In this document: positions 4,209 through 56,335 of the stretch, piece by piece
How the letters are laid out: the number at the start of each line of letters is the position of its first letter
Numbering within the stretch: position 1 is the first letter of the stretch
Assembly: GCA_965112735.1 (NCBI GenBank)
Contig: OZ218963.1
Span: 2,542,001 to 2,606,000 of the forward strand
DNA from: Phaeosaccion multiseriatum
Lineage: Eukaryota; Protista; Ochrophyta, other classes
Reading direction: 5' to 3'
Length of the DNA: 64,000 nt
Notes under the pieces: model-generated
What the model saw: the letters and a program-made list of their open reading frames with translations, nothing else
Told to the model about the DNA's origin: nothing
The model's database searches: none
Program-made: the position numbers and the translations under genes

Positions 4209-4282
4209 AAAGATCATTCGCCCACGCCCTTAAATCTTCAATATCCGCGTGTTTTTTTTGTCTTACGAGGTCAGATGAGGCA

Positions 4283-6831: not shown

Positions 6832-9800
6832 TCATTGCTCCTTGCTCTTCGAAGACCGCCTCCTCACATACAGCATACGACCACCCCACAACACAACAAG
6901 CACAACCAGGGCAATCACACAGCCAACCAGCGGTGTATACTTGAAAGAACCCCCTAACAGCGCGACAACAGAAGACAAAATTTCCCCAAGCACCGGTCCA
7001 AGGATGGCGGTAAAGCTTGCTGCGTTGTACGCTTCTCCCCTATGGCTGTAACAGCGCTGCCAGGGCTTGGATGTGTACCATGTGTACCAGCGACCCCAAG
7101 ACCCTGGCGGTGACGCTTGACTTCGGCCGTCCACATCCTGTCGAGAGGATTGGATTCGATCCAAGCGGCGGGACGGGACGGGGGAGAATGCATCATCGAA
7201 GGGAGTCTTCACCCGTTTCGCCCACTGCACACGGTATCGTACAAGTAAAGTAACAATATCACACGTCTCCATCGTGGAGGGAAGGACGGGGCAGGGGCCA
7301 AAAACTTACCTGTTTGCAACGTTTCCAATGATTGCACCTCTCCTCCTTCTGCCGTTCCTCCTCTTTGTTCTCCTCGACAAGCTGATTCTTCCAGACCCCC
7401 TCGAATGCTGTCTCCGAGCTGCTTTGGGCATTTTCCAGCTCCGGCGCTTCAAACATCCTGTCCACCTGGATATTAGCGTTTCCCAGTGCCATCCACGAGT
7501 CTTCCTTGTGGTGATGACAGGAACCAGAACACCCGAATCCTTTCGGGTTGAGGCTTCCAAGTGTCTTCTTGTCACGACTGAATCTGGGCCAGGAATCCTA
7601 AAAGGAACGAAAAAAATTGAACGTCAGCACAGAAGCCCGCCACCTATCAGGCAGTCACTTCACAAACAGAAGGAGATTCCTCTTACCTCCCACAAAAGAA
7701 CTGTCTCCAAGGAGCAAAACGGACAAGTGAGACGACATCCTCCGCACTCATGTGCAACGTCCCTCAAGACTTCACGCGTCGTCCCCAACATGAAGCCAAG
7801 GGCGCTCGCCGCCACACTCCCATTGCCCAAGGCTACCTTCGGATCCCCAAAGGAAGCAAGGATCAGCTTTCTCTCTCCGACGTCGTAGTTTACGTAGGCC
7901 CTAAAGGGAGAACCAGTGTAGGCCCGCACCGGTGCCAGCCAAGCCCCAGTCTTCCAACGCAAAAAGGTGTCACCAAGCTTAGCCTTCACCAGCGCGCTCA
8001 CAAGGGACCCGATCTTCCAAGAGGGAGGATGGTGTTTCCACTCCAATGTAACCCTCAGCTCCCACCTCTTGAATGCTTTTGCCCATTCGACTGCTTGCTC
8101 TCGCTGACGGCAGCCCTCTCCGCCAGGAATGCTCTCATCTGGTATTCTGAGGGTGATCTGATAGTGTCGGCCGCCATCCTCCAAACTCTCCACCGGAAAC
8201 AGGATGCCTAGATCTTCGAGCTTCTCAAGGATAGCTCTAACATCGCTCTTCTCCAACACGTGGATCCCCATGTCTTCCGCCGCACGCCCCCACTTTACGA
8301 GCACACCATCCCACAACGACTTGGCGAACTCTTCGGTCAACTCTCCATTCAGCAAGTCAAGCGCTCCCTTGAAGTCGTCCATGTGCTCCTGAACCCCGCC
8401 TCGTACTTGCTCTTGCGGTGTCACCTGTCGAGATTGGCAACCGAGGAGCGATCCCATCCATGAGAATGTTATGAACCATACCGGGGGAACAGTGCCTCAC
8501 TCAGCTTGTCCAGAGAGAAAAAAAGGCACGCACCTCGCCTACCACAATCCTCTGGGCATTGCCACGTCCAGTTATGATCATCTTGTCCAATGGAGTCAGC
8601 AGCGGGCTAACGATCCGTGCGAACCAAGCCGAATCGAGAACAATGAGTGTCCTATCGTGTTCAATGTCCCCTACTACAATGAGCACAGCATTGTGGATCC
8701 TGGAAAGGAGAGAGTATATGCGAAAGCAAGGTCAGTTGTAGGCAGTTCCAAAGGGAAAGACTAGCGTTCTGAGCGACTTACATCATCCTCACGACGCAGT
8801 GCAAAACACCTTGCAAGGTAGCCGAATCACCCTCAAAAAGTGATGCCTTGTCCACCCCCAGCTCTTGCTCCTTCCCACGCAGCGTGTCGCATAGACCGTC
8901 CCACCGGGCTCGTAGCTCACCCATGGTCATGATGTAGGGAACACTGGGCCTGCTCTCTTGCGGTGCTGTGGATGAAGATGACAACGCCTTGATGACTGTG
9001 TTGCACAAGACTTCGTCTGTGGTACCTCTTAGAGAGAGAGTCTCCAGCATGATGAGGGCAGCCTGCCAAGGCACACCAACCACAAACTTCCTACAGCCCT
9101 TCGCGTACAGTTCCTCAAGGAGGGCACCCGATGGATCAAACCTACTCCACCCTTCGCTGAGGATTCCAAGAACATTCTTGTACCACGGGGCGCAGCTCAC
9201 GGGGTAGGAGGGTAGGGAGCGCATGGCATCTAGAAAGCGTTCACGTCCAGCACGAGCACGTCCATGTGCTTCTTCTTCTTCCTCTTCCCCCTCTTCGTTC
9301 TCCAGTGATATTGTGAGTATGCCAACCACGCGCTTTCGGATACGGTCGGCCTGCTCTAACACGCGTGGCACTCGTCCCCAAACGGGCACTTTGTCACACT
9401 TGGAACCAACCAGCACCAAACGAGAAGGTCCTGTCGCAACACTTTGGTACCGCAGTGTTTCTACGAAGGGTTCAACGTCGAGCCGCATTCGGTCGTCAAA
9501 GCCTTCCTCACCACCACTCTCACAAAACTCACGTGCCCTCCACAGCAACAGGTAAGTTGCGCCATCCGGACAAAAGAAGGAGTACAAGCTGCGGTACAAA
9601 ATCTGCCCCCCACAATCAAAGAATCGCATTGTGATGGGCTCATCCCTCGGTCCCGTTGCCTCCCAGGACACCATTTCAACCCCTGTAGTTGAGGGGTTTG
9701 CGCCCGTTGTGAGGGCAGCCCGTCGACATTGTAGGCTGCGAAGTAAGCTGTGCATGGGTCGGGGGTGCAGGGCGTGGGGTAAGCCTTTGGAGTCTTTGTC

Positions 9801-12330
9801 TGCAGAAGAGTTCAACCGAAGCAGCCGAGAGAGCAACGAGAATACAAGCCATACCTCGTCTTTCCAGCACCGGATGCACCGAGCAGAACCACTTTGATGG
9901 TGTTGTACACGCCACGCCCCTCCAACACAGATTCATAATAATTTTCGAGGGCGGCGCTGCCTTGTTTAGCTACGCCGAGAGGGGGGAAGTCGAACGGGTT
10001 CCCATCGAAGCCCCCTGTCGTGCCGTGCCGCGCAGCGAAGGCAATAAGGCCTTCCACCTCCTCACAGCTTGGATCCCAAAGCCCTGTGTGCGAGGCGTAA
10101 CAGCACAGAAATAAGAAGAGGGAAAACATTGATGGTGCGGCACACGAAGTCAGTGCACACTTGGAGCGGTGATATGAGGTAAAGGCGGGCGGCATGTTGC
10201 GACAGCTTCCTTACGCAAACCCGATTTTCACATGGAAAAGATGCAAGCTCGAAGAGTTTTCCAGGCTCAGCGGAGTCGCACGTTGGTAACACCACTTACC
10301 GCTGGCTGACATTGTTGTCCTTTAGGAGCAGCCCCCAGTTACACACACTAATATAAGTAAAAGAGACACGAACGGGTTCGCGTACCACTTACCAGTGAGA
10401 TTGTTGTGCCGCAGGCTGAGCACGATTAGGTTCTCAAAACTTCCAAGCTCCCTTGGAATGCTCCCTGCGGAGCGAAGGGGAAGTTCTTTGTCACACGACT
10501 ATCAAACGAATGGGACGCGCACGGGTGTGCGTACCCACTACCTTCTAGACTGTTCTTGTTGAGCTGAAGTTCTCGAAGGTTCGAAAGCTCTCCAAGTTGC
10601 GGCGGAATGTTTCCTGAGATGTGGGGAAAGTTCTTCAGCCACACTAATATCAAGTGAAAGGGACGCGAACGGGTGTGCGTACCACTTACCAGTGAGCTTG
10701 TTTTCGTCGAGGTACAGTCTCTTTAGGTTCTGAAGACATCCAAGCTCGGGTGGAATGCGCCCTGCGGATGGGATGAAAGTCCTTTGATCATACTCATATC
10801 AAGTCAAAGGGACGCGAACGGGTACGCGTACCACTTACCGGTGAGCTTGTTGTTGTAGAGGTACAGGTGCGTCAGGTTCTCAAGACTTCCAAGCTCGGGC
10901 GGAATGTTCCCTGTGGAGCGGAGGAAAGTTCTTTGGTCATACTTACATCAAGTCAAAGGGACGCGAACGGGTATGCGTACCACTCACCGGTGAGCTTGTT
11001 GTTGTAGAGGTTCAGAGTCTGAAGGTTCTTCAGCCTTCCAAACTCTGGTGGAATGCTCCCTGCAATGGGAGAAAAGAGTTCTTTGGTCACACAAATATAA
11101 AGCGAAAGGGACGCGAACGGGTACGCGTACCACTCACCGGTTAGCTTGTTGTTGTTGAGGGACAGTTTCTCAAGGTTCCGAAGACCTCCAAGCTCGGGTG
11201 GAATGCTCCCTGCAATGGGAGGTACGTTCTTGTCACACGACTATCAAGCGAAAGGGACGCGAACGGGTGTGCGTACCACTTACCAGTGAGCTTGTTGCCC
11301 CACAGGCTGAGCACCGTCAGGTTCTCAAGACTTCCAAGCTCGGGCGGAATGCTCCCTGCCGAGCGGAGGAAAGTTCTTTGTCATTCGACTATCAAGCGAA
11401 TAGGACGCGAACGGGTGCGCGTACCACTTACCAGTGAGCCTGTTGAAAGAGAGGTCCAATTGCTCAAGCTTCTTCAGACTTTCAAGCGCCGGTGGAATGC
11501 TCCCTGCGGATGGGAGGAGAGTTCTTTGGTCACACTAATATCAAGTCAAGGGGACGCGAACGGGTGTGCGTACCACCTACCTTCTAGCCGGTTCCCCCAG
11601 AGCACAAGTTCTCGAAGGTTTGAAAGGTGTCCAAGTTGCGGCGGAATCCTCCCTGAGATGTGAGGAAAGTTCTTCAGCCATACCAATATCAAGTCAAGGG
11701 GACGCGAACGGGTACCACTCACCGGAGAGGTTGTTGTAGCTGAGGCACAGCTCCACCAAGTTGGTCAGCCGCCCCAGCTCTGGCGGAGAGGTCCCTGCGA
11801 AGCAGAAGAGAGTTCTTTAGTCACACAAATATGAAGGGAAAGGGACGCGAACGTGCGCGTACCACTCACCGGTGAGGTTGTTGTCGCCGAGGCTCAGCCC
11901 CTCGAGCTTCTCCAGACTTCCGAGCTCCCCTGGAATGCTCCCTGCCGGTGGGAGGAAAGTTCTTTGGTCACACTAATATCAAGTCAACGGGACGCGAACG
12001 GGTTCGCGTGTATCAGACAGATGTATGCGTCTCCCTTCTCTCTCCCCTTCTTTCCTTTCCCCTCTCGAAGGATACACACTAAAATCACGAGGTTCATGGA
12101 AGACCAACCCCCACCTCCGCCCCAACCTCTTCCACGGCCTTCTCACCTTCGAGCCCGTTCCTGGAAAGGTCGAGCTTGACCACAGATCCATTATCCACCG
12201 TCACTCCATGCCACTGTTCCAAAGGTTGTGAAGTCTTCCACCCCCCTCTTTGTGTCCATTGCTCTCCGTTTGTGGCCCCATAGAGGGCGATGAGTGCTTC
12301 ACGCTGCTGCGGCTCTTCTACGTGCGACAT
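6832..12330 (-). CDS. LRR-ROC-COR (ROCO) protein with two C-terminal TM helices, multi-exon
   Basis: Inferred exons: 12330-12147 (LRR N-cap); 11 x 72-bp LRR exons; 10083-9855 ([14 protein letters not shown]); 9747-8782 (SLLRSL, TTGVEM, FFDCGGQ, LVGSKCD); 8699-8534 ([17 protein letters not shown]); 8424-7687; 7597-7310; 7224-6832. All are GT-AG and frame-consistent if the broken exon at ~10300 is skipped. Confidence 0.85.
10290..12010 (-). repeat. LRR exon-intron cassette array 1 (11 intact units + 1 broken)
   Basis: 72-bp exons at 11870-11941, 11723-11794, 11581-11652, 11432-11503, 11284-11355, 11138-11209, 10988-11059, 10839-10910, 10690-10761, 10542-10613 and 10393-10464, separated by conserved 70-78-nt introns. 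Confidence 0.95.
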
Positions 12331-12728
12331 CACGCACTGGGGTGTGCTGGTTCTAAAGAGTCGCCGCCAGGCCGGGAAGCTGCCCCTACCCCTGTGATCT
12401 CCTCCTGCTCTTTTTTCTTTTCCCTACTCCTGTCTCTGGCCCTGCAGGAATACAGATTTTCATGAGGTGCAAGTGCTGCTATTGCCACTGCTGTCGCTAC
12501 AAAAGGAATCCTTCTGGCACTGTCTGCTGCCTTGTTCTTTGGCGCTATCTTTTAAGCTATATTGTCATGTGTACCATTCTATGTGAAATTGTCAAGAGCA
12601 ATCACGTCTGTTCGTTATGGGTGTGTCATAAAAGATGCGGGTGGGGCTGAGAGAGGGCCAGGAAAGATCTCTGCATGCAGGAGCGGAAACCCCATTCGAA
12701 ACGAAGTATTCCGCTCCATTTCTTTCTT

Positions 12729-15144
12729 ATGAAGAACTCTGCGTTGAAGCTGCTAGTGGTGTGGCTATCGCACAGCTCGCTGAGTAGAGCACGCGCCGCT
12801 ACTGTGTCATACCCAGACAATGTGGGAAGCAAAGCTGTGATTGAAGGTACGGTGGCACTATATGTGAGCTTGTCACCATACTCTCAACAGCACCTCCTCC
12901 CATGCTCACAGCATCCTAACGCCTCAAGCAAATACCCTCTCCCCAGATTGTGAATTTGAAGAAGATGCTTCTACTTCTGTAGGGTCGAACGCTACACTCG
13001 AGTCATGCACATTCAAGAGCGACGTCACAGCGTTTTCTTCTTCCGTGCTGAGGAATTGCGTGTTCGAGCAGCGCGCGGATGTGGGTTCTTCGGCCTCTGT
13101 AGTGGACTCGGAATTCAAAGGCATCGCGACACTTCGCTCTTCTTCCGTGCTGAGGAATTGCGTGTTCGAGCAGAGCGCGGATGTGGGTTCTTCGGCCTAT
13201 GTAGTGGACTCCGAATTCAAAGGCACCTCGACAATTCGCTCTTCTGCTGAAGTGACTGGTATCACGGTGCAAGGATCATCTTCTGTGGGGTCGAGCTGCG
13301 TGGCTCAAAGAATTACGGTAGTGGGACCTCTCGCTATGGCAAGCAATTCACGCGTTTACCCTCCTGCAAACGAGGCGTGGATCTTTCGAGGAGGGTTGGA
13401 AATGGCATCTTCTGTGCATTTCGACGATGTTTCCGAGGAGCAGCTCAATGCATACTCGTTCCAGCCAACAGAGGGTGTGTACTCGAGGGAGTTCCCTCAC
13501 GCGATTGTCCTGCGGTCGGACGGCTACATCGAGGGTACACAGATTCCGTCAGGATCTACCCCCACCACAGCCCCTACCACTACCCCACCGACAAGGGCAC
13601 CTACCACTCTCGTTATACGGACCCCAGCCCCTTCGGTTTCTTTGGCCCCTTCCACATCATTCACTAAGGCCCCAGAAGAAGCACAGAGTACAGAGGCCCC
13701 AGAAGAAATGGAGCGTACAGAGGCCCCGGAAGAAATGGAGCGTACAGAGGCCCCGGAAGAAATGGAGCGTACAGAGGCCCCGGAAGAAACGGACACTACG
13801 AGCGATTCAGAGGAAGCTACCCCAGCTCCTCAGACCCTTGCACCCACTGCTGAAGAAAAGGTGCCAGCGACCACAACTCAATCACCCTTGCCTTTTGATG
13901 AAGCCGAGGCATCGCCACGAATCCCATTGGAATTGACGCATATCACATGCACAGACTTCCTCGAGGGCTTTGGCTTTGGAGATCTGCAGAGATGTCTTGG
14001 TATACTCGATATCGGTACATACCGGAACAGAACCGTTCATGGGGAGGCTTTTGGAGATTCATCGGAAGATGGGGCCCCGTGCGCACGTATAGTTGGTGCT
14101 GTGCAAGATGACTGTGTCTTGGAAGTGATTGCGGTATTTACAGAGGGCAGCTACGGTCCGATATTCTTCGACGACATTACAGAATCGAGAATGACGTCGA
14201 CTGTTTACTCGAACACTGGAGTTCCATTGTGCGACTTGGCTTACAGTGTAGTGGACCCGAGCTCCCAGCTCCGGAGAGTACTTTGTTCACCGTTGGCTAC
14301 ACCTTCAACAACAGATTTTCTTGACAGCGACGAAGGTACATCCGTCACCCTGGAACCTACCCCTGGACCTGTGCCATCAACGCCGGCGCCATCAGATACA
14401 TCAGCTCCCGTCACCCTGGAACCTACCCCTGGACCTGTGCCATCAACACCGGCGCCAACAGATACCCTGGAACCTACCCCTGGACCTGTGCCATCAACAC
14501 CGGCGCCAACAGATACATCAGCTCCCGTCACCCTGGAACCTGGACCTGTGCCATCAACACCGGCGCCATCAGATACGTCAGCTCCCGTCACCCTGGAACC
14601 TACCCCTGGACCTGTGCCATCAACGCCGGCGCCAACAGATACACCAGCTCCCGTCACCCTGGAACCTACCCCTGGACCTGTGCCATCAACGCCGACTGTG
14701 TTCATCACCGCCGTCAATGATTCATGTGGCGCTGCCCTCAATCAAAGAAGTGGGCAGTGCTTGTCTGAGATTCGTCTGAACCTCCGAGTGAACAGAACGA
14801 TTGAAGGGGTCGGCTACGGTATTAATGGGTCTTGCGCCGTGCTGACAGGCGAGGTGACACAGGAATGTGAAGTGGACATGTCAGTCCAATCCATTGATGG
14901 CACAAACTTTAATGTGTCATTTAGTCGAATCGGTGCGACCAACTTGATCTACACATACTACTTGGACTGCTTCCTTCTCTACAAAACGGTGGATGCAGAC
15001 AGCGACCTCAAGAATGTTCTCTGCCCAGACTCGGACACAAGAAACACACAGGAAGAATCCGCGGCCGTCAAGACGACGAATGTATCAGTCATTGGTTCCT
15101 CCATAGTGATGTTAGTTGGAATCGTAGCTCTGCTCCTCGTCTAG
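12729..15144 (+). CDS. Secreted, probably GPI- or membrane-anchored mucin-like surface glycoprotein
   Basis: Exon 12729-12846 (signal-peptide-like), intron to 12946, exon 12947-15144. Contains a 102-bp duplicated beta-helix-like repeat, 27-bp EAPEEMERT repeats, ~66-bp VTLEPTPGPVPSTPAP repeats, two Cys domains and a hydrophobic C-terminus. Confidence 0.75.
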
Positions 15145-15498
15145 CTTTCCGTGTTGTGTTCCTGTGTTTTTTTGTTTGTTTTCCCCCGCGTTTATTTAGG
15201 CATGGCAACAGTGGTCTGTGGCCCCATAATTTTTTTGAGTAAAGAATGTGTGTTCTAGTGAATTTAATCGAGTGTTGCACATTCGTCCCTATCCCTCTTG
15301 TATGTACAAACAGCTGGAGATGAAAGGGGTATTCAGGCTTGATCGTTGGCGCAACACCGAACCCTCTTTTCCCCCTTGACATCCACCATGGTGCTATTGC
15401 ACATTGGGCACATTTTACGTGCGCCCCACTCAGAAAGCATGAAAGTTATCACAGATGGCACCAAATGGTGCCTATAAAGAATGTGACGCACCACTTTC

Positions 15499-17445
15499 AT
15501 GAGGATGCATCTTTTCGTTTCGTTTCTGGCTGGTCTCTGTCGCTGGGACAAGAGCACGGTAATCAACGCTGCGAATATCTCTCTTTCTACCGTGATTGCC
15601 TCGAACGTGAACTTAAAGCTGGTCGAGAACACGTGCCCGCAAAAAATCTCATCGACCATTGCACTTTGTGCATCGCGGGTTGTGCTCAAAGCGACCGCAG
15701 ACGGACCGAATGAAGTACAGAGCTTAGTGGACTTTCAGGGGGAAACATGCGACCTGGCAACTACATGGGATGTTAATGACGACTGTACTCTGCAAATCTC
15801 TGTTGCCGTCTTGGGGGGGCTTCGTGTCACATCCGAAGAAGTGATGGAGGACAAAATTGAGTTCAAGTACACTGATGAAGAGCAGTGTGTCGCAACGTTT
15901 GCACCAGCAAACACAGGTGTTGATTTAAGGGCAAGCTTGTGCCCAGACAATACGCACGAGCCGGGCGACAAAGCGTTAACCGCTGAGGCCGCTTTTGCAG
16001 CAGACTTGACACTTACTGCTCTCACAAGGGAAACCATCAACGGGGTTGGAATCGCACGAGGAGGGGCCGTGACACTTGAATTGAAGGTAGACGAGCGTCC
16101 AGTATACATGGATACCATCGTCGCATTGGAAGATGATTTTGAAAGGCCGGAGACTTTGGGTACTATCTGGGGATTCGCGGAGCGATGGTCCAGAGATTCG
16201 AAGCAGGCGGTTGTTCACACAGAGTTCGTGGTGCAGCAATGTGTGTGTTTAGACCTCTTCTGCGAGCAAAGGGTTGCCACACTCGATTTTGGAGTATACC
16301 TTATCGATCGAGGTTTTCTCCAAGTGTCTCCCCTGCTACCGCTGTCACCGGAAGGAATCCCGCTTGCCTGCGGTTATGCTGCATACCTGAATTGGACGAA
16401 TGTTTATGCTGGAGGAGACTGTGAAATCGTCGAAGACCTGGACTATTGGGTGAAAGGAATTACGACGTGTGGGGATATTGGAGAATTGAAGTTGTACGAC
16501 AAACGCGACGACACTCTTGTTGCACGCGCGTTAACTTTGGATGAAGTCATGCCCCTTTCATTGGGTGGCTTCGACGTGTCACCCAACACTAGCCTGTCGA
16601 CGGTTGTGAACTCTCTTTTGTTTGGCGCGACTCCCTCCTATTTGGAAAATTTTACCTACGCTGGGGTGCCTTTGCTGGAGTGGAAAACTAGTGAAGTATT
16701 CCGGCACTTACTCTACGTCGGACAATTGCAATCTCTGTATTGGGTAAGTACCCCCATTCTTTCCACCCTCCCACCCCCCCCCCTACTCAAGCTCTTCCTC
16801 ACCTTTGACATGCACCCTCCCTCCCTCCCCCATTTCTTTCTTCTTTCCTCTCTTCAGGTTGATTCTGACGACACCGAGTACTGCAAGGACTCTCCGTCCT
16901 TACAAAATATGCTCAGAGAGATCCCTTCCATTGAAAGTCGGCTGTTGACTTTTCTTATCATTTCAGCCTTTCCCCTTATTGCAACTTACTTCGGCTTTCA
17001 ATTGGGAGAGCTACTGAATACCCTCCGTGAACTGCACGACGACAAGAAAGCTACTGACTACCAGAGACAAAGGATGATAGCATTCCTACAGCTGTTTCTA
17101 TCAGGCTATTTTTTCATTGTGGAAGTTATCCTCTTCCTTTCTCTCCGGAAGCCATTCCAGGATTATACCAGGTACGAAACGGTTGCAGTTCAGGTGAAGG
17201 GGAGTCTTGTCGACGGACAAGCTTCCCTTGACATCCTGGCCAATGATTTGTATTTAAGTCTTTATCGACAGCTTGTATGCGTTTTCACTGTGAGCACATC
17301 CACCGAAAGTTGGGTAGAGTGGGTGCTGCCGACCATATACACAGCCTTTGCTTTCGGCACCCTCTTCATGATTGGGGCGTTCACTCTTGCGTTGCTGTGT
17401 CCTCGAAAGCACCGCGAGTCTAGTAAATATAAGATAATCTGGTAA
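15499..17445 (+). CDS. Membrane protein with an N-terminal Cys domain and ~3 C-terminal TM helices
   Basis: 648-aa ORF containing an in-frame, stop-free 114-nt intron at 16744-16857 (gtaagt...polypyrimidine...cag). Confidence 0.7.
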   Translation: MRMHLFVSFLAGLCRWDKSTVINAANISLSTVIASNVNLKLVENTCPQKISSTIALCASRVVLKATADGPNEVQSLVDFQGETCDLATTWDVNDDCTLQISVAVLGGLRVTSEEVMEDKIEFKYTDEEQCVATFAPANTGVDLRASLCPDNTHEPGDKALTAEAAFAADLTLTALTRETINGVGIARGGAVTLELKVDERPVYMDTIVALEDDFERPETLGTIWGFAERWSRDSKQAVVHTEFVVQQCVCLDLFCEQRVATLDFGVYLIDRGFLQVSPLLPLSPEGIPLACGYAAYLNWTNVYAGGDCEIVEDLDYWVKGITTCGDIGELKLYDKRDDTLVARALTLDEVMPLSLGGFDVSPNTSLSTVVNSLLFGATPSYLENFTYAGVPLLEWKTSEVFRHLLYVGQLQSLYWVSTPILSTLPPPPLLKLFLTFDMHPPSLPHFFLLSSLQVDSDDTEYCKDSPSLQNMLREIPSIESRLLTFLIISAFPLIATYFGFQLGELLNTLRELHDDKKATDYQRQRMIAFLQLFLSGYFFIVEVILFLSLRKPFQDYTRYETVAVQVKGSLVDGQASLDILANDLYLSLYRQLVCVFTVSTSTESWVEWVLPTIYTAFAFGTLFMIGAFTLALLCPRKHRESSKYKIIW

Positions 17446-17871
17446 TGTGGATAGCACTGGTGGAAACTTAAGAATCTACCTGAATATAGTTGGAACTTCA
17501 TAATCGAACGGACGAAAACGATCCCAATAAGTATAGAATGGAAGAACACTTTAACTTCTCGACAAGCATCCCTCTTTGCTCGAAAAAGGGACTGCACGTT
17601 CTCCTCCGTGATGATACAAAATAATGATACCAAATAATTCTAAACGGTAGCTGCTCCCACGAGCTGGTGTTGGGTCCATCCATGCCCGTGTAGTGAGGTA
17701 GCTCGAGGACCGCAGGATCATACGTGGAAGGAACTGTGCATATGGGTGGAGAACCAACTGTTGAAGTTGGTAACTGTGATACGTAAGGCGCTACATACTA
17801 CATACCGGTATTGCAGGACGTACCCCCAATAAATACGTGTGTCCCGAAAGCACCTACTTGTACACATCAGC

Positions 17872-18972
17872 ATGACGCCTTGGGGCTTTTTGAAGGGATT
17901 CATGACCTCGTCGATAAGCGTACGTGATTCAGACAGGAACAGCGACGGCGAGCTAGACGGAAGTGGTTCAGCCAGGGACAGCGCCAATGAGTCAGGCGGA
18001 AGTAATTCAGCCAGGGAACCGCTGAACAGCAATCCACCGAGTTCTGGCCATGGGAATACCACATCTGGGATAAGTGGCACTGACACAGGCAATGATGAGA
18101 TGAGTTCTGGGTTGAAGAGGCTTCTTGAGGGGTCGGGAGTCACAGACGACTTACAAGATTATCTCTCAGAGACAGATCTTGACGAAATCATCAGAGTCCA
18201 TGATGAGCAAAGAAGTATGAAGAAGTCTGATGAGCAAAGAAGAAGTACTGACAATGGACACAATGGGGATGAGGGAGAAGGAAAGGCCGCCGATAACTTG
18301 GCTGATCCAGAGTCCCAAGTGCAGCCACGAACGCTCGAAAATGCGAAAGTGCTCCAAGGAGTGCTCCAACGAGTGCTCCTCAGAAAGATCAGATTTGGCA
18401 ACAAAATACGTACACGACAGGTTGAGGGCGCCAAAGAAAAATACAAGGGGAAGGAGTACATGGGCATGTGCAATTGGCGCAGGTACTTCTGGTCCTGTTT
18501 GCTGTGTAAAGTGTACCTACCGGCGGAGTACATGCTCACTGCCCGAACTTTCTCAATTACGAGGAAGGGGTACAGAAATGCGTGCTGCTTTTGCGGGTAA
18601 GTCCGGGTAAGAGGGACGGAGGAAGATGACAACGCCTTCTCTTTATCGTTTCGCTCCCCCCCATTTGATTTCCTTGCTTCTTTGTACAGACCGCGTTGTA
18701 GGAAGCCCAAGGTATCGTCGATTAACACCGTCGATCTTTCAATGGTTCGTGACGTAGACTTGGAGGTACACAGACCCTGTCTCTGCTACTGTTGCTGCTG
18801 TTGCCCCTACGAAGAGGAGGTGACGATCGAGACTGGTACTGAGGTGGTTGAGGTGCGCGTCAAGGAGGACTCCGAACCAGAGGCTTTGGAGTGTAACTTG
18901 AGTGGGGGTTCCTGGCTTGACATACTCCGGAATGGAGTTGAAGAATGTCAAATGATGCAAAGGCATGTTTAG
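17872..18972 (+). CDS. Hypothetical protein with a Cys-rich C-terminus
   Basis: Two ORFs joined in frame by intron 18597-18689 (gtaagt...tacag). Confidence 0.6.
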
Positions 18973-20042
18973 TTCCGTTAGATTGGACTTGCCAGGGTGA
19001 TGATGTCGGGACATGCGAAGTCGTATCACCAAGGCACCGCCCATCTCGCCATCGTGGAGCACATCGCGCGGGCGCAAGCAGGATAAGTATACATGAATGA
19101 TGAACAAAGCTACATACTTGCAAACAAACAAAATAGCATGATCTTCGAGAGCAAGGACCCCCGTCCAGGAGAGAAGGAAGAACGTGAGAATTTCTAGTGC
19201 ATGCATGCTCGGTGCGGCAAAGCTCGAGAAGACGGGCGGACAAGCAGCGGAAGGTTCCCCTGTTACACACAGTAGAATCCCCACACAACATACTAAAACC
19301 CAAGGCCAGGCTAGAAGCCAGCCTTGCAACTTACTATTAAAGTATCTCATGCTAGTCCTTTCCAAACATGATACAGGGACAACGCTTTCTTGTCAATGGG
19401 GTGTCATCAATTGACATATTGCTCGCTCTGCCCCCCTGGGGTGAATGAAGCGGCTAGTTTCCCCAAGATCAAATCGGCTCCAGACTGGACTATAAGCCTA
19501 GGCCTAGAGACGAAATTCGGCCGGCCTAGGGGGGCCGCAGGCCCCCGGTCTAGGCGTGGAGGGGGGCGCAGGCCCCTGGCCTAGGCCTATTTTTGGCGCA
19601 GCCCCCCCGACCTCCTTTCTCTCTGAGCTTTAGTAAGTATTTGTTGAAGTGGAGTGGTGCGATGTGAGGCTTTTTTGTTTACTACACAAGGCAGACGTGG
19701 ATGTGGCTGCGCGGGTGGTATTTGTACTACACAAGGTAGATGCGATGTTGATTCAAGGTTGAAAAATGTAGGTGGTCATGGCATTGCCGAGTGAAAAAGG
19801 GGCAGGCATGGGTAATGTGGGTTGGGTTTGGCCAAGCCAGATCGTATCGGGCCATGAAACTGGAACTACGAGGACCGGTCGCGGATCGTTCCGAGCGTAG
19901 AGTGCCATCCCGTAGTAATCTGGGCTTTCGCGGACTGGCGTGGTGTACTACTTTTCGCCGAATCCAAAGTATATTTTCGCGTCTAGAGAGTATAGTGTGA
20001 AGCCACCTGTCCAGATAACGGTTTACATGTAAAATAGAGCCT

Positions 20043-22359
20043 CTAGATCCTCGCATCACCAAGTGGGCTGAATTCTGGCTTATCCTCGCCTCCGTCAGCG
20101 TCTGTCCCTTCCTCTCGCACCACCCCTTCCCCTTGTATCGTCGGGTCTCCCGCACTGAAACAAAACCGCGCAGCCACCCTCATCAAAATATGAACACACA
20201 GAGCAGTTGCGGCGATGATGATGCTGTTTCTCACGATGTGGTCCGGGACGTCTTTAACTCCTCCGAGTCCAGCGAAAAGCATAAAGAAGACGTTCTCAAC
20301 AGCTACCAGCGCAATGACCGCCACCTGCCGGGTTTCGTCTTGCAACAGCGCTGAGACGAAGCCTGCAGCAAAAGCATTGAGTAGGCGCAATCGCTTGCTC
20401 CCCAGATCATCCGTGGTCTTCCCATGCGATTCGATACACCATCGCGTCCAAAGCAGCCAAGGTAAAGCGAGGAAGCAAAAGTTGCCCGTAGTCAACGCAA
20501 AGAGAACCATCGATAACATGCGAGACAAAATGTCCGTCAGGTGGAAGAGCAAGTGCCATCCAATGTGCCGAGCGAGCGCCAGTCCGTACAGGATGTAGCG
20601 TTTCGACGACGCACATAACGCTCCAATAGACTGCCGGGGCGCACTATAGAAGGCTCTGGCGTGTCGTGTTGTGGCCAAACAGAGGGTCTGTAGATACGCA
20701 CCAAGCGACGCACAGGAGGTCCACAGGAAGAGACCTAGCGATGTGTACCATGACGTGCTTCGCTCTGGGGTCTCTTGTGCCGCTAGCTCTTCCGCCGTCT
20801 CTGCTGCCTTCTCCCCAAAAATTTCGAGAGACGCGGCCTCCAGGGAATTTTCTACCTTTTCCGCACTCAAGATGCTCATGAGCTCCCATGCCAACGAGAA
20901 AATCGACCCGAACACCGATATCAAGAGCACATTGGACACGCTGTCAGTATCCCATCGGGAGAGCAGTGCGTATAGCTGAATGAGCATCTGCGGAATGGTC
21001 TCGAAGACCGACTCTCCCCACTTCAGCAGAACCATTCCCGCTGTCTTTTTCCCCCCACCCAGCTCCGATACGCATCAAAAGGAACCAGCAAACAAACCAT
21101 GGCGAGAAAAGGGTCCCAAGATGAGTGTGAAGTGGAAGTCAGGGCTGCCACTCCGATAGTCGGCAACACAAGAAAGGCGACAGCAAGCCAACACAGCGCT
21201 GGGCTATACTTGGCAAACGCTGCTATCGCCGCAATGTCCGAGACCACATCCCAGTAGTAAAGAAGGACATCGCTTGCCAGAAAGAATTTCGAGAGCGACG
21301 ATTTGATCTCAGATTGCTCAATGGCTACAGCTGAAAAGTCGTTCCCCGGAAGTATGTAGTCTTTATCAAATTTCCTCAACCACGACGGAGGAACAACGCC
21401 TACGAGTATACAAGAGCGACAAGCGTGTCAGATTCAAAGTTTAAGCACATCAAGTATGCCACACTCACATAAGTTAGCGTTCACACCAGCTCGAAAAAAA
21501 CAAACAAATCAAAAGACGCGAACGGGTGTGCGTACCACTCACCGGAGAGCTGGTTTCTATGGAGGAACAGATGGGTGAGCTTGACGAGACGTCCAAGCTC
21601 GGGTGGAATGCTCCCTGTAGATGGAGGAGAGTTATTTGGTCATACTCAATCAAGTGAAAGGGAATGCTCTCTGCGGAGCGGAGGTACGTTCTTGTCACAC
21701 GACTATCAAGCGAAAGGGACGCGAACGGGTGTGCGTACCACTTACCAGTGAGCATGTTCATGGAGAGCTCCAAATGCACAAGCTTCTCCAGACTTCCAAG
21801 CTCCCTTGGAATGTTCCCTGCGGAGCGGAGGAAAGTTCTTGGTCATACTTGCAGCAAGTCAAAGGGACACGACGCGAACGGGTGGGCGTACCACTCACCG
21901 GAGAGCTGGTTGTGGTAGAAGTTCAGAACGGTGAGCTGGACGAGACGTCCAAGCTCGGGTGGAATGCTCCCTGCGGATGGGAGGAGAGCTCTTTGGTCAT
22001 ACTCGTATCAAGTGAGCGAAAGGGACGCGAACGGGTGTGCGTGTATCAGATGTATGCGCCTCCCTTCTCTCTCCCCTTCTTTCCTTTCCCCTCTCGAAGG
22101 ATACACACTAAACTCACGAGGTTCATGGAAGACCAACCCCCACCTCAGCCCCAACCTCTTCCACGGCCTTCTTACCTTCGAGCTGGTTGGTGGAAAGGTC
22201 GAGCTTGACCACATATCCATTATCCACCGTCACTCCATAGCATGGCTCCAAAGGTTGTGTCGTGTTCCACCCCCATCTTCGTCTCCATTGCTTTCCGTTT
22301 GTGGCCCCATAGAGGGCGATGAGTGCCTCACGCTGCTGCGGCGCTTCTACGTGCGACAT
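20043..22359 (-). CDS. LRR + XK-related (Xkr/CED-8-like scramblase) fusion, with one frameshift
   Basis: Exons 22359-22176 (N-cap); LRR exons 21970-21899, 21817-21746 and 21614-21543; then from 21399. XK motifs WDVVSD, ESVFETIPQMLIQLY, SIFSLAW and DILSRMLSMVLFA. One-base frame break at ~21047-21056. Confidence 0.7.
21513..22045 (-). repeat. LRR exon-intron cassette array 2 (3 intact units + 1 deletion scar)
   Basis: Same exon and intron consensus as array 1. Confidence 0.92.
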
Positions 22360-22570
22360 CACGCACTGGGGTGTGCTGGTTCTAAAGAGTCGCCGCCAGG
22401 CCGGGAAGCTGCCCCTACCCCTGTGATCTCCTCCTGCTCTTGTTTCTTTTCCCTGCTCCTGTCTCTGGCCCTGCAGGAATACAGATTTTCGTGAGGTGCA
22501 AGTGCTGCTATTGCCACTGCTGTTGCTACAAAAGGAATCCTTCTGGCACTGTCTGCTGCCTTGTTCTTTG
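22020..22570. repeat. Segmental duplication of 11990-12540 (upstream region, N-cap exon, intron 1)
   Basis: Long near-identical stretches shared by the ROCO and XK genes. Confidence 0.9.
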
Positions 22571-22974
22571 CCCTGACGCTCTTCCCCCAGCGAAAAATTG
22601 ATGCCACTGCACGGCAAACCGAAACTTAACATGGAGTCCTATTTCGACCAGAGATGGGGGCGGGAGGAAGGGCGATGTTCGAGGTCTGAGTAGTTGCCGA
22701 GTCCCTCCCTCGCCCTTCCGCCCTAATGACATGCCTCTATTTTCACCCACCATTTTGCTGTCATCCTCGCGGATCAGGTGTGTTCGCTCCTGTGGGGCAG
22801 CCCACCCGACTCCGTCGTGGTCGTAGCTGGCGTGCATGGCTGGCGGTGCCGAGCGGCTATGCGTACCTGGGCTGTGCAGCTCCGTTGGGGAGGGGACGAG
22901 CGTGGGGGGTGGCGTTAAGGGCCACATCGGGGCGGTGGCTTAGGCGAGGGCTGCAGCAGCATCTCGGTAGCGTA

Positions 22975-23400
22975 GTAATGGGCAGGGGAGAACAGCTTTG
23001 ATGGCAGCGTCTGTGGCAGGACACCGAAGTGTTGTGCGAAAGCTGCTCCCGGCTGGTGCCGAGATGAATGCGATCAGTGGCGGCGGATACTGAGCGACAC
23101 ACGTGGCCTGTGCTCATGGCCATGCTCGTGTCGCGGAGGAACTCATCTCAGGAAGGTGCGGTCTGTTAGGGGGGGGCATCGCTTTGTTTCATGCTGCGAG
23201 CGGGCTATGTGGCAGTGATCCGTGCGCTCCTGCTTGTCTACGAGGGGGCTGATACTGACAATGGGGGCGGCAGTTCCCTTGGCACGCCCTTGAGCTGCTC
23301 TCAGGAAGGACCTCGCCGGCAATGGCTCTGGTCAGAGGCCGTAGGCTCAGCGATGTAGCAGCGATCCAATGCCTTCTGGCCGCAAACAGTCAACGCTTTG
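22975..23400 (+). pseudogene. Degenerate ankyrin-repeat gene
   Basis: NGQGRTALMAASVAGHRSVVRKLLPAGAEMN..* ATHVACAHGHARVAEELI, with stops and frameshifts. Confidence 0.65.
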
Positions 23401-24187
23401 CGTCACAGAGCGTATTGGACGGACGTTATGCAAATTTTGACTTGGCTACTACGAAGGGAGACTGAGGGTGCCAAGGACGGCGGGGCAGCGGGCTGTGATG
23501 AGTTGTCTCATGGCCTTTGGTGTTGGTGAATGAACGCACACGCTGCGGGGAGGCGGGCGCAAATTACGAGTACGTCGGTAAGCCCCAGGGGAGGGAAAAC
23601 AGCGGCGAGGGAAGGAGAGGGGCGCTCCGGGCCTCGGCCAAGCGCAGCCAGGACCACGCACCAAAAGTTCTCTGGGGTTAAGGTGCAGCCAGATAGGCCA
23701 AAAACTGGCGTCCTCTTGCTCCGTTTTCTTGCCTCCGCCCCTCAGCCGTGCGCATGTTTGCCCACCACCCCTGCTGGACTGCCTGCTGGGGACGCTGTAG
23801 AAGGAGCGGGGACTTACGGTGAGTCGAGGCGCACACGAGAAGCAAGGCAGCGGCGTCCTCCTTGCCCTCCTCTGTCCCTCTGGCGATTTTGCTCCTGCGT
23901 CTTCTCTGGCGAGCATCTTCCGCTCTTTTGAAGAGGAGAGCAAGGCGAGAGCGCAGCAGCGGGAGGAACAGAGGCTGAAGGAGGAGAGCGACTGCAGGCG
24001 AAGGAGCACGAGAGACAGCGTCAGCTGCAAGAGGAGCAATGGCAGCGTCTGGTGGAACGTCTGGTGGAAGAGTTCGGGTGAAAGTGTCACTCATTCGTTT
24101 CGTCCTACGCTGGGCGGGAATGGGCTCATACCTTCCTCCAGTCTGGGTACTTCTCCTCAAACTTGGCGGCATTTTCGTTCAGCACCC

Positions 24188-24691
24188 ATGGACAACACCT
24201 GCAGTGGGTGCGGACTCCCCTTCTGCCCACTGGAGCTGTCGGACGACGAGAGTGAACAGTATGACTCTGAGGACTATGGATTTGGGGAGGATGTGGACGT
24301 GGAACTCCCGCCTCATTGTCCAGGATGGATATCCATGCGGACGCACAGGAGACGTGGAACTCCCGCCTCATTGTCCAGGATGGATATCCATGCGGACGCA
24401 CAGGAGGGGTACACTCCCATTTTTCGGGAGGACAAAACGTCCCTTTTTTTTTCGGGAGGATGTGGACTAGGGAATGTGGCGGTGGTGCAGCAGCTTCTTT
24501 CCGCTGGCGTGGACAAGGAGCATGAGGACAATGAGGGGTGGACTGCTCTCCTGTTCGCGTCTGCCCAGGGACATGCATCGGTGGTGGAGCTGCTCTTGTC
24601 CGCCGGGGTGAGCAAGGAGCATACGAGCAATAATGGGAGGACTGCTCTCTTGTGGGCGTCTGCCCAGGGACATGCATCGGTGGTGGAGTAA
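24188..24691 (+). pseudogene. Short or truncated ankyrin-repeat gene
   Basis: GWTALLFASAQGHASVVELLLSAG and GRTALLWASAQGHASVVE* (stop in mid-repeat); tandem duplication at ~24295-24410. Confidence 0.6.
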
Positions 24692-24744
24692 ATAGTGAAA
24701 ACTTGGTCAATGTCTAAGACATTGCTGATAAAATCTACTCGTCA

Positions 24745-27700
24745 TCACAGCTGTTGTTTCGCCGAAGAAAGTGAGGTCTCTCCCTCTCCCTCCTCATCCC
24801 CCCCCTTCTCCTCCTGCCTCCTGCCTCCTCCTCCTCCTCGTCCTCCTCCCCCTCCCCCTCCTCCTCCTCCTCCTCCCTCTCCATCCTTGTGGTCTTGCCT
24901 TCCAGCACTGGTGCCGTCCGATGGCTGTAACAAGAAAGGGACTTGAAAATCACCCGTTGGATGGATACTATCAGGCAACCTCCTACGCCGAAGCTCCCAA
25001 CAGTACGATACGACAACAAGGGCAAAATAGCCGAGCACCACACATATAACGACGCTGATCTTCACTTCCTTTGCCCCTTCAAGAAAAAAGGTGGTGGCCC
25101 CACTGGCACACAGAAATGTGAGGAGTGTCGTGATTGCCCTCTTACACGTTACCCACTCCGCTGACTCTTGCGTGAGTTTTGCGTCAAAGGCTTGACATGT
25201 GGCTCCAATGGTAACATCCGTGGCACCAACCTCCAAGTCATTTGGTCCCAGGACCACTACAATGGGCTTAAGAGCGGTTGTTGTTGTCCCCTCCACAGGC
25301 GTGACGGGATGTACCATGACGCTCGTAGGCCCAGTCTCACTCTTTAATCGAACCGAGAAAAGAAGCGGGTTGCGCTTGTGCAGCATGGCCTCTCTGCCCG
25401 CGATGAAGCCTTTTCCTGCGTCTTCTGCAGTGAATCCCTGAGACAGGAATGAGAACGCGAGGAAGGAGAAAAGCAAAAAGGGTCGGTGCTGAGAGAAGCA
25501 CAGCAAGCAGCCCCCAACCACTAGCACTAGCTAGGCAGCCCAGTAGATCAAATGCAGGCCCCGTGTTCTTACCAAGGGCCTCATAGGGAGACTACCGACC
25601 CTCTCTGCCGTCGCGTCCACCTTCATTTGTTCCCTTACGTAATCCTTTATACTGTTCCGCGCGTGCCACTTAGCATCGTATTCTCCTTGAACAGTACGGA
25701 GCTCGAAGCGTGTCCCTTCCAGTGCCACGAGGAGGAGCGCTCTATCCCCGTTTCCATATACAATTGAGCACCCAAAAGCAAGCATGGGTCCGACAGCAAT
25801 ATCTGTTGTGGGGGAAACGTATGAAACATACGTAAGACAGGGTTGCTTGGTGTGGAAAGACTGAATTCCAGTTCCAGGGGGAGGTGAGATTGCTTACCTG
25901 GCACAGGGCAGGATATACACAAACAGTTCTTGTCGAACGCCTTGAACTCTACTTCAACAGCGAAGTCATGAGTGCCATCCTCCTCCTCCGGAACCCCCGT
26001 GGGTATCGCCCTCCTCACTCGGTATGACCACCGCCACGCCCGTTTCCACTTCTCGCCGTTGTGCCGAGTATGCACGTTGTGTCGCCAGAGGTTGGGGTGA
26101 GCTGCTCCCATGACGGGATATGACACAAGGATGGGGTGGAGGGGCAAATGCTGAGTGCACTCGAGCGTGATGATCGGGCCAGCCGCCACGTGGCCAGCAG
26201 GCAGAGCAGGTACGTCATCCGGGGCATTCGCTTCGCGGGCATTCGCTGCGGTGTCGAAGTCTACGGTCAGGGTCAGACGCTTCCCCGCTTTCAGCGCATT
26301 CGCTGGCACTGTCACACCCACACCCATGAGCACATCTTCTGAGACGATGCCTTTCCGCGACAAATCCCTCGTCAGCGTGATCTCAGCGGAGAATTTCGAC
26401 CCCCGTGCCCCTCTCTCCTCGATTTTCTCCTCCCACCTTCCTTCCCCGCTCTCCTCGTCCCCTTTCTCCTTCAACCAGGCCTCCCTCCTTCTATCGTTCC
26501 TCTCCTTGTGCCGCGGTACTGTTTCAATCTTGTCCTTTCCTTTCTCCCCTAGTTCTGGAGGAAGAGAAGAAGCACAAAAGCAAGCCAGGAGTGTTGTCAA
26601 CGTTTGCGTGCTTAGAACTTCGCCTCATGGCCACACGTACGCCTCTCACCTCTCTTCCTCCTCGCTTCGTCTACAATTTGTCTCTCAATCTCCGTAACGT
26701 TTCCTGTAGGTTGGGTGCAGAGAGAGCCAGAGAGAGCGTGGTAGGGGAGGAACCAATGCCATGGTCGTGTGACAGTAGAACAGAGACGGTTCTCGCGTAC
26801 CGTGCACGTAATATAAGGGAGGAGCGTTTGTGTTCGCGTACCACCTACCTTCTAGAGAGTTCCATGACAGCCTAAGTTCTCGAAGCTCTGCCAGCTTCCC
26901 CAACTCCTTTGGAATGTTCCCTGTGGAGCAAGGAAAGTTCTTTGGTCACACTAACATCAAGTGAAAGGGACGCGAACGGGTACGCGTACCACTTACCGCT
27001 GAGCTCGTTGTCGTGGAGGTACAGGTACTGCAAGTTGGTCAGATCTCCCAACTCCTTGGGAATGCTCCCTGTGGAGCGGAGGAAAGGTCTTTGGTCACAC
27101 TAATATCAAGTCAAAGGGACGCGAACGGGTGCGCGTACCACTCACCGGTGAGCTCGTTGCTCCGCAGGTTGAGCACCGTCAGGTTCTCAAGACTTCCAAG
27201 CTCGGGTGGAATGTTCCCTGCGCAGCGGAGGAAAGTTCTTCAGCCATACTTGTATCAAGTCAAAGGGACGCGAACGGGTGTGCGTACCACTTACCGGAGA
27301 GCTGGTTTTCCCCCAGGTAGAGCCCCCTCAGGTTCTCAAGACTTCCAAGCTTGGGCGGAATGTTCCCTGCGGAGCGGAGGAAAGTTCTTGGTCATACTAA
27401 CATCAAGTGAAAGGGACGCGAACGGGGTACGTGTACCACTCACCGGAGAGCTGGTTGCTGTGCAGGCCGAGCAGCGTCAGGTTCTCAAGACGTCTAAGCT
27501 CGGGCGGAATGTTCCCTGCGGAGCGGAGGAATGTTCTTGGTCATACTAACATCAAGTCAAAGGGACGCGACGCGAACGGGGTGCGCGTACCACTTACCAG
27601 TGAGCTCGTTCATGGAGAGGTCCAAATTCACAAGCTTCTCCAGACTTCCAAGCGCCCTTGGAATGTTCCCTGCGGAGCGGAGGAGAGCTCTTTGGTCACA

Positions 27701-28248
27701 CTGATATCAAGCTAAAGGGACGCGAACGGGGTGTGCGTACCACTTACCAGTGAGCTTGTTGCCCCACAGGGTGAGCACCGTCAGGTTCTCAAGACTTCCA
27801 AGCTCGGGCGGAATGCTCCCTGTCGAGCGGAGGAAAGTTCTTTGTCATTCGACTATCAAGCGAATAGGACGCAAACGGGTCGCTGGACTGCCACACCGTG
27901 CCGCGCCTCATCCCTTCTCTTATCCCCCTTTGATCGCCCTTCCCGAATATTCTAGACCCATCACAAGTAGATGCATGAACAGAGAGAGAACTTCCGAACA
28001 TTCTGGAAATACTTCAGAATACTCTTCAGTACCTCAGGCGGAACAACCACAATCACGTCTCTCTCACATTTGAGGCCGTTCTGCGCCAGATTAAGCTTCA
28101 CAACATAGTCATTCTCTACCGTCACTCCGGCCCAGTTTTCTACAGGTGCTTTCGTGTTCCATCCTGCTTTGTTAAACCAGTCGGGTCCTCCCGTGGCGTG
28201 GAAGAAGGCCGTGAGTATTCTACGCTGTCCCTCGAGAACGCTAGGCAT
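24745..28248 (-). CDS. LRR + ZU5-like domain + two C-terminal TM helices
   Basis: Exons 28248-28068 (N-cap); 7 x 72-bp LRR exons; 26703-26650; 26554-25898 (GVGVTVPANAL..GPIITLE..PILVSYP, ZU5-like); 25802-25573; 25437-24745. GT-AG and frame-consistent. Confidence 0.7.
26830..27880 (-). repeat. LRR exon-intron cassette array 3 (7 units)
   Basis: Exons 27748-27819, 27598-27669, 27444-27515, 27295-27366, 27146-27217, 26997-27068 and 26849-26920. Confidence 0.95.
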
Positions 28249-28974: not shown

Positions 28975-29652
28975 TAGCCTAGCCTAACGCCTGCTACCAC
29001 CTTCCGAAGCCGTTACGGAGCCAGAGGCTTCTCGCGCCTCAGCGAGAGACTTCCCTCCCTCTGCATCTCACACTCCCTCACGCCATCCCACTGGACCCCC
29101 CCACCACCCCCGGACCACGTCTGGACCTCAGTCGGCGGCCACTAGTCCCTGACACAAAGACTGACCATCAATTACGTGGGTGACGCACACCATTCGGGCG
29201 GGCTCCACTGCGAAGCCTAGTTTAGCCTCTGCGGCGACCGAGGGAATACGAATTACACACAGCAGTAGCAAGACTACCCAGAGACTATATACCCGCGATT
29301 TCAGCCTGTGTCGATGCCTACACCGTACGAACAGGGCCACGGACGACGGCCCCTTTTTTGGCCTTAAAACCCTCCGAAAACCCTCGTACGAGGGTTTTAA
29401 GACGATTTTCGGCCCTCGTCCAAAACCGTAAAACCCCCGTGTACGGGGGTTTTAAGACGATTTTCGGCCCTCGTCCAAAACCGTAAACCCCCCCCCGTGG
29501 GAGGGTTTTATTACATTGTAGAGTGCTTCTCTCCCCCTCCTCGTCAGACCTACTGTAAATACTTTTCAAAGCTTCGAACTCCCCTCCCCCTGTTTTCTCT
29601 AAACCCGGATCTTCCCGACTCTTTTTTCCAGGCAGTGATAAGGTAGAGGACA

Positions 29653-55400: not shown

Positions 55401-56335
<935 letters not shown>

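Follow-up and report, generated by a model that had tools for sequence, protein, structure and literature searches.

How does one kind of leucine-rich repeat (LRR) exon come to stand in the 5' part of genes that end in unrelated modules? We met this question in a 64,000-nucleotide stretch of the Phaeosaccion multiseriatum genome (contig OZ218963.1, positions 2,542,001 to 2,606,000; hereafter the window), where three neighbouring genes, here called G1, G2 and G3, each carry an array of 72-nt LRR exons, or cassettes. Exon-shuffled LRR genes of this kind are the main candidates for pathogen receptors in brown algae, an independently multicellular lineage, and published work on them has centred on ROCO GTPases. 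A first-pass annotation of the window had proposed that one shared cassette pool feeds three membrane-anchored effectors, namely a Roc-COR protein, an XK scramblase and a ZU5 protein. We consider it likely that the genes of this cluster all belong to the brown-algal "type I LRR exon" family and that their arrays are joined to different C-terminal modules.

We searched the whole window for 72-nt segments bordered by AG and GT that stay open in phase 1 and fit the LRR pattern. The scan returned exactly 11, 3 and 7 LRR exons in G1, G2 and G3, all on the minus strand, and bore out the counts, phase, consensus and common orientation given in the first-pass annotation; the cap exon in front of each array is borne out by the gene models. 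All 21 exons are exactly 72 nt long with AG/GT borders and an open phase-1 frame, and each encodes one 24-residue LRR. They carry the type I consensus GxxPxxLxxxxxLxxLxLxxNxLx and the symmetrical (1-1) phase. The introns between cassettes, put at about 75 nt beforehand, measure 70-82 nt, with a 131-nt intron of G2 as the sole exception; a dead cassette sits inside this intron. No further array occurs in the rest of the 64 kb, which yielded only three weak (6/9) pattern matches, two of them isolated (one per strand) and one overlapping the G2 dead cassette, and the scan found no reverse-strand cassettes in the window. Tandem Repeats Finder delimits the same regions as arrays at 10344-12009 (period 149, 11.2 copies), 21661-22042 (period 153) and 26899-27880 (period 149, 6.3 copies). 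Rfam matched no family anywhere in the window.

The introns, of ~76 nt, are more alike than the exons they separate, with a background identity of 78% against 66%, and their core GGTACGCNNACCCGTTCGCGTCCC occurs 17 times, always inside the three arrays, where 0 occurrences are expected by chance. Within the repeats, variation is concentrated at positions 9, 11, 14, 15, 17, 19, 20 and 22: positions 14, 15, 17, 19, 20 and 22 hold 7-12 different residues, compared with 1-2 at the L, N and P positions. The spliced models of all three genes have GT-AG at every junction, and they place the ends of the three-gene stretch at 6832 and 28248, as first annotated. Hydropathy also agrees with the claim that all three C-termini carry transmembrane (TM) segments. 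None of the three N-termini has a hydrophobic, signal-peptide-like stretch (as read from the sequence rather than from a predictor), so the LRR arc is probably cytosolic.

Cassettes and introns are common to the three genes. The fifth repeat of G1 (R5) and the first of G3 (Z1) are identical at 71 of 72 nt, X2 of G2 and Z2 of G3 at 67 of 72, and R4 matches either X2 or Z2 at 59 of 72, while R3, R10 and Z7 form a separate "E-ending" cassette type. In a maximum-likelihood tree built from each exon together with parts of both flanking introns, the gene label changes eight times, where 2 changes would be the fewest possible and an average of 8.6 is obtained after shuffling the labels (P=0.42). The supported clades that cross gene borders are R5+Z1 (95/87), X2+Z2 (91/92, joined by R4) and Z7+(R3,R10) (93/94), and X1+X3 is the only gene-specific clade. 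Strict clustering of cassettes by gene had been set beforehand as the outcome that would refute the proposal; it is not what the tree shows, and the claim of cassette sharing therefore stands. The intermixed tree is matched by mosaic tracts of 94-100% identity between the genes, which are listed in Table 1.

Related cassettes also follow each other in different orders. G1 has R4 and then R5, whereas in G3 the relative of R5 (Z1) precedes the relative of R4 (Z2), so that a single duplication of the whole array cannot explain the pattern. Type I shuffling has been recognised by inactivated cassettes and by recombined tracts within and between loci; here the dead cassette of G2, the mosaic tracts between genes and the intermixed tree are signs of it. 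Nor is the pool confined to G1, G2 and G3: in the DNA runs the cassettes reach a contig depth 44-147 times that of their flanks, and the pool is therefore genome-wide. One small feature of the intron core deserves separate mention, a 5-nt TCGCG duplication found only in the intron before X2 of G2 (21818-21898, minus strand) and in the intron after Z2 of G3 (27516-27597, minus strand), which we read as a shared derived marker of an exchange between these two genes.

These patterns suggest a process of germline recombination. Symmetrical exons set in homologous introns would let cassettes be added, deleted or swapped without loss of frame, both within and between genes, by unequal or ectopic recombination and gene conversion that the homologous introns may guide. 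The mosaic tracts and the dead cassette of G2 would then be footprints of cassette turnover, and selection would keep the scaffold residues while diversifying the concave face.

What the arrays are joined to differs from gene to gene. G1 runs from 12330 to 6835 on the minus strand in 18 exons and has an intact open reading frame (ORF) of 1,251 aa, with its stop at 6832-6834. The Roc motifs known as G1, G3 and G4 (not to be confused with our gene labels) are present in the spliced model. Pfam Roc scores 19.7 bits (E=0.001), below its cut-off of 27, on an exon that does not include the P-loop, and among PDB sequences the Roco protein 4wnr_A scores best (E=0.24), with an alignment over the DxxGQ region. 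About 550 residues follow the Roc domain, with a weak Pfam Cdc6_C winged-helix match (E=0.001). The long intron behind the last G1 cassette, at 10084-10392 (minus strand), contains the remnant of a twelfth cassette at about 10300-10330, in which the last ~20 nt of an LRR exon are followed by GTAAGTGG.

G2 appears to be a composite. A block of 524 nt comprising 5' flank, cap exon and most of intron 1 is 94.8% identical between G1 (12018-12541) and G2 (22047-22570), which points to an origin of G2 by the copying of a G1-type 5' module (flank, cap exon and intron 1) to a place before an existing XK exon. Within the duplicated module (12147-12541 versus 22176-22570), the non-coding flank is 98.1% identical and the cap exon 89.7%, the latter with 13 nonsynonymous and 3 synonymous codon differences. 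This excess of replacements fits diversifying selection and relaxed constraint alike. From the donor of the third LRR exon (21542), the predicted splice to the acceptor at 21400/21399 enters the XK exon in phase and in frame. Because no start codon precedes its first TM segment, that exon depends on those upstream of it. Pfam recognises its downstream part as XK-related (PF09815): the score is 28.2 bits where 24.8 are required (E=1.2e-6), the match covers positions 130-175 of the 337 in the model, and a trimmed piece scores 25.4 bits. In addition, 84 of its 100 neighbours by Atlas features, which derive from a protein language model, are XK-related clusters. A PDB sequence search with the exon gave no match, and AlphaFold run without an alignment reached a predicted local distance difference test (pLDDT) score of 44 on the XK piece, which was not used for a fold search. 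Of the XK effector first annotated for G2, the XK-related match above cut-off and the in-frame entry from the LRR array hold good; the exon itself is not intact, its frame being broken at a G6A5 homopolymer. By analogy with animal relatives, the output of G2 would be lipid scrambling of the XK type.

G3, from 28248 to 24745 on the minus strand, has 11 exons and an intact ORF of 754 aa (732 aa with an alternative donor). The label ZU5 proposed for its ninth exon could not be confirmed, the neighbours in protein-language-model space being its sole support. Atlas neighbours of the exon do include ZU5, UPA and FIIND clusters at 0.83-0.94, with 153 of 256 shared features, fewer than the 170 typical of true members. 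Pfam gave nothing for this exon even at E<=10, and PDB sequences nothing at E<=10. No UPA signal appeared in the exons that follow, among the Atlas neighbours of the last one. AlphaFold without an alignment gave a pLDDT of 37 for exon 9, and the model was not used for a fold search. When 1.84 billion representatives were searched exhaustively with phmmer, only three bacterial repeat proteins came up (DUF7933, FG-GAP and similar), all of which we judged spurious. We would describe the G3 module as a beta-rich, lineage-specific region, possibly with a ZU5-like fold, that leads into one or two TM helices.

Several results weigh against reading the cluster as three family members with different working outputs. 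The G2 effector exon, as it stands, stops after 125 codons, and only the addition of one nucleotide or the loss of two at the G6A5 run opens the whole 452-codon exon. Two hydrophobic segments lie before the break and at least four after it, so the exon does not at present encode an intact multipass protein. DNA contigs from three runs have G6, as in the window, and those from one run have G5; both are out of frame. In all likelihood G2 is a young pseudogene; the most favourable readings are very recent decay or a sequence problem. (An intron that would rescue the frame was also sought: 328 GT/GC-AG combinations keep the frame, none of them with the GTRAGT donor and pyrimidine-rich acceptor of the other junctions.) For G3, the effector region has no detectable homologue in Pfam, PDB or the 1.84 billion representatives, and could be a fast-evolving or even non-functional tail. 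For G1, none of the Pfam COR models matched the exon pieces. The splicing of LRR exons to effector exons is predicted from gene models, and the four read sets, all from one sample, cover the introns and intergenic DNA of 20951-26950 at even depth and behave as genomic DNA. The exchanges themselves are reconstructed from sequence mosaics within one genome. A sensor role for the arrays, with GTPase signalling, lipid scrambling or ZU5-type signalling as outputs, is what we infer from these architectures.

Could the arrays simply have been inherited, with one ancestral, differentiated array duplicated along with each gene and no cassette moving afterwards? Recurrent cassette types such as the "E-ending" R3, R10 and Z7 would be expected under such a history, and the 5' modules of G1 and G2 are indeed a plain segmental duplicate. 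However, related cassettes stand in different orders in different genes, partners in a single gene pair may be anywhere from 69% to 99% identical, the tracts have borders within both introns and exons (the 74-nt G1/G2 intron stretch of 100% identity lies beside exons of ~65%), and the gene labels on the tree are indistinguishable from random. We regard pure inheritance as improbable. At the other extreme, a somatic, adaptive-immunity-like rearrangement of cassettes, with the conserved intron core as its recombination signal, was put forward as a hypothesis in 2012 (main text of PMC3341825). The core is strongly conserved and confined to the arrays, and the homology of the cassette introns begins near it in the first intron of each array, which such a signal would predict; yet the point where this homology stops in the last intron differs among the three genes, and a predicted intron hairpin is essentially without covariation (1 of 9 pairs, in one sequence). 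We see no somatic variation here; the sides of the apparent joints in the DNA contigs measure only 22-28 nt, with extra letters between them, which is what paralogous cassettes from elsewhere in the genome would give. Rearrangement of this kind strikes us as highly improbable.

The fate of the genes after such exchanges is a separate matter. That G2, and possibly G3, are by-products of birth and death, non-functional or decaying chimeras formed when shuffling set a ROCO 5' module or an LRR array beside unrelated exons instead of a designed receptor set, is an explanation that we take seriously without favouring it. The frame of G2 is broken both in the window and in each of the four read sets, with G6 and G5 alike, the gene carries a dead cassette, and its cap exon has accumulated the 13 nonsynonymous and 3 synonymous differences while the flank remained 98% identical; the lack of a homologue for the G3 effector region points the same way, and up to 20 of the 37 ROCOs of Ectocarpus have been counted as pseudogenes (main texts of PMC3341825 and PMC11378527). 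Against this, the two halves of the XK exon on either side of the one frameshift are both open (124 and 325 codons), so any decay must be very recent, and the LRR donor is in phase with this exon, which has no start codon of its own to precede the first TM segment. G3, for its part, has 11 exons, canonical splice sites and a complete 754-codon ORF. It might also be that the G2 frameshift is bypassed, either by a -1 ribosomal slip on G_GGA_AAA or by polymerase slippage that adds one base. The break falls exactly on such a heptamer (21046-21062, minus strand), which fits X_XXY_YYZ in the zero frame; the shift required is -1, equivalent to a 1-nt insertion, and the downstream frame is open from before the site while the upstream frame stops 18 nt after it. 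But the RNA downstream folds no better than shuffled sequence (z -0.5 to -1.5), and by our estimate a 1-nt deletion in a G/A run leaves a heptamer of this type in about one third of registers by chance. Programmed -1 frameshifting is, moreover, rare in cellular genes. The heptamer is probably a by-product of the homopolymer deletion, and we give a bypass hardly any credence.

We therefore retain the reading of the cluster as three members of the type I LRR exon family with different C-terminal modules. A more far-reaching version would have a single pool wired, within 22 kb, to three membrane-anchored outputs (a Roc-COR GTPase, an XK-type lipid scramblase and a ZU5/FIIND-like module), as part of a brown-algal modular family of sensors and executors that extends well beyond ROCOs and swaps effectors by 5'-module duplication, as seen for G2. 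The animal counterparts of these three modules all act in cell-death signalling. This wider proposal seems to us unlikely.

Table 1. Coordinates of the features discussed in the text (positions in the window).
Feature	Position	Strand	Details and basis
G1 cap exon	12147..12330	-	ATG at 12330; LRRNT-like; ends ...NGLEG; phase-1 donor; gene model
G1 array, 11 LRR exons R1-R11	10393..11941	-	Introns 70-78 nt; scan and model
Exchange tract, G1 R5 with parts of both flanking introns	11242..11416	-	Versus G3 27705-27880, 97.2% over 176 nt
Exchange tract, G1 intron after R5	11218..11291	-	Versus G2 21680-21753, 100% over 74 nt
G1 linker exon	9855..10083	-	Ends in Roc P-loop GASGAGKT(S); translation of spliced model
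G1 Roc (DCGGQ, SKCD) and COR-A-like exon	8782..9747	-	Pfam Roc, PDB 4wnr_A
G1 exons 15-17 (8699-8534, 8424-7687, 7597-7310), C-terminal COR region	7310..8699	-	Model; weak winged-helix match
G1 last exon	6832..7224	-	Two hydrophobic helices (aa 1194-1212, 1218-1236), stop; model and hydropathy
G2 cap exon	22176..22359	-	Duplicate of G1 5' module; ATG at 22359; sequence comparison
G2 array, 3 LRR exons (21970-21899, 21817-21746, 21614-21543)	21543..21970	-	Scan and model
Exchange tract, G2 X2	21718..21832	-	Versus G3 27569-27684, 94% over 116 nt
G2 dead cassette	21615..21670	-	Splice acceptor with 11 nt from the start of an LRR exon; fusion at TCCC to the 3' portion of a cassette intron
G2 effector exon, XK-related multipass membrane domain	20043..21399	-	Pfam, Atlas neighbours, frame analysis
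G2 G6A5 homopolymer, frame break	21046..21056	-	Frame analysis, read contigs
G3 cap exon	28068..28248	-	Diverged LRRNT-like; ATG at 28248; gene model
G3 array, 7 LRR exons Z1-Z7	26849..27819	-	Introns 76-82 nt; scan and model
G3 exon 9, charged linker and beta-rich region	25898..26554	-	In-frame phase-1 acceptor at 26554
G3 exons 10-11 (25802-25573 or -25639; 25437-24745)	24745..25802	-	TM segments aa 625-643 and 649-667, then Gly/Arg/Glu-rich tail
Long terminal repeat (LTR) retrotransposon nest	34600-52245	-	Integrase with H2C2 zinc domain, chromodomain, reverse transcriptase-RNase H (Ty3/gypsy)
DNA_pol_A_exo1 3'-5' exonuclease domain in LTR nest	36166-37170	-	
Ty1/copia-type RVT_2 reverse transcriptase in LTR nest	48927-50522	-	

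The surroundings of the three genes are mixed. What had first been taken for a virus-like insertion consists of nested LTR retrotransposons, the nearest of them about 6 kb away from G3; we detect no link between them and the LRR genes. Between G2 and G3, and convergent with the 3' end of the latter, lies an ankyrin-repeat ORF (23819-24691, plus strand; Pfam Ank_2, E=2.9e-13). Four long intronless ORFs of 576-758 aa on the plus strand (4211-5938, 12868-15141, 15487-17442 and 29647-31557) stand out as unusual, given how rich in introns the genome is. Pfam matches none of them, a hydrophobic segment closes at least two, and the one at 12868-15141 overlaps proline-rich tandem repeats at 14342-14694; an IMG/VR scan of those at 15487-17442 and 29647-31557 found no viral relative. 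Further out, the ORF at 1072-2604 (plus strand) contains a Laminin_G_3 / concanavalin-like lectin domain (E=2.9e-10), and a 934-nt (AG)n-type microsatellite occupies 55401-56334 (reported period 8, 117 copies).

The locus is of use in two respects. It allows single exchanges between genes with different outputs to be traced base by base, and it illustrates one route to a new receptor architecture, in which a copied 5' module comes to lie before the exon of an existing membrane protein. Should the XK-related and G3 modules prove to be expressed and functional, they would tie recognition directly to membrane events such as lipid scrambling, with a possible bearing on the local cell death that one report describes as a brown-algal resistance response to an oomycete (PMC12396294). 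At present this connection rests on gene models, with one of the two new architectures broken.

Much of what we see has precedent in Ectocarpus. There, as here, type I genes have one 72-nt exon per LRR (up to 18 repeats in the main texts of PMC3341825 and PMC11378527), an LRRNT-like cap, shuffling within and between loci, and variation on the concave face. According to the main text of Zambounis et al. 2012 (PMC3341825), which defined the 72-nt type I LRR exon, exons of this type occur in 37 ROCO loci, in 5 LRR-kinases and in 46 of 164 other LRR loci; the authors traced intra- and intergenic recombination and saw in the remaining type I loci a possible "reservoir of diversity" on which ROCOs could draw. 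The paper also describes many pseudogenes and a ROCO subgroup with one or two C-terminal TM segments, and the architecture of G1 is that of this published TM-anchored subgroup. Teng et al. 2024 (main text of PMC11378527) extends the work to four brown algae and reports alternative splicing of LRR exons. The sharing of cassettes across effector classes, first thought to be undescribed, was thus already known in principle from the kinases and the 46 other loci (PMC3341825, main text), and one cassette type serving different outputs has been published. The combinations of LRR array with XK-related exon and with the G3 module appear new. The Ectocarpus papers treat ROCO, kinase and NB-ARC-TPR genes, whereas here three architectures with traceable exchanges lie within 22 kb. 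XK-related or ZU5-like partners are not mentioned in the main texts of PMC3341825 and PMC11378527, where the 46 other loci are not itemised, and full-text literature searches found no paper combining Ectocarpus with ZU5, nor brown algae with LRR and XK-related. A word search with the XK exon and the Roc-COR exon gave no matches among proteins of 0.55-1.75 times the exon length, a range that excludes full-length relatives and makes the result uninformative on conservation.

Beyond the brown algae, the comparisons become looser. Xkr8 and CED-8 scramble lipids at apoptosis. The G2 exon resembles these proteins and animal XK (PF09815) in its match above cut-off and in the helices on both sides of that match, and differs from them in the shortness and strong divergence of that match, in the N-terminal LRR array to which the domain is fused, and in its broken frame. 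Fusion of XK-related domains to other domains has been found in another stramenopile, Pirsonia (PMC13524835). The likeness of G3 exon 9 to the ZU5 or ZU5-UPA (FIIND) regions of UNC5, ankyrin, PIDD, NLRP1 and CARD8 is one of language-model neighbours. In NLRP1 the ZU5-UPA (FIIND) region follows an LRR array, as the corresponding region of G3 does. Unlike the ZU5-UPA proteins, G3 has no support from profile hidden Markov models, sequence or structure and no UPA signal or death-fold domain, and TM helices follow instead. Single-LRR cassettes are also combined in the variable lymphocyte receptors of jawless vertebrates, which are assembled somatically from non-coding flanking cassettes in a process resembling gene conversion. 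This parallel is one of analogy only: the cassette at our locus is a spliced exon of a germline gene, and the exchange in evidence is evolutionary.

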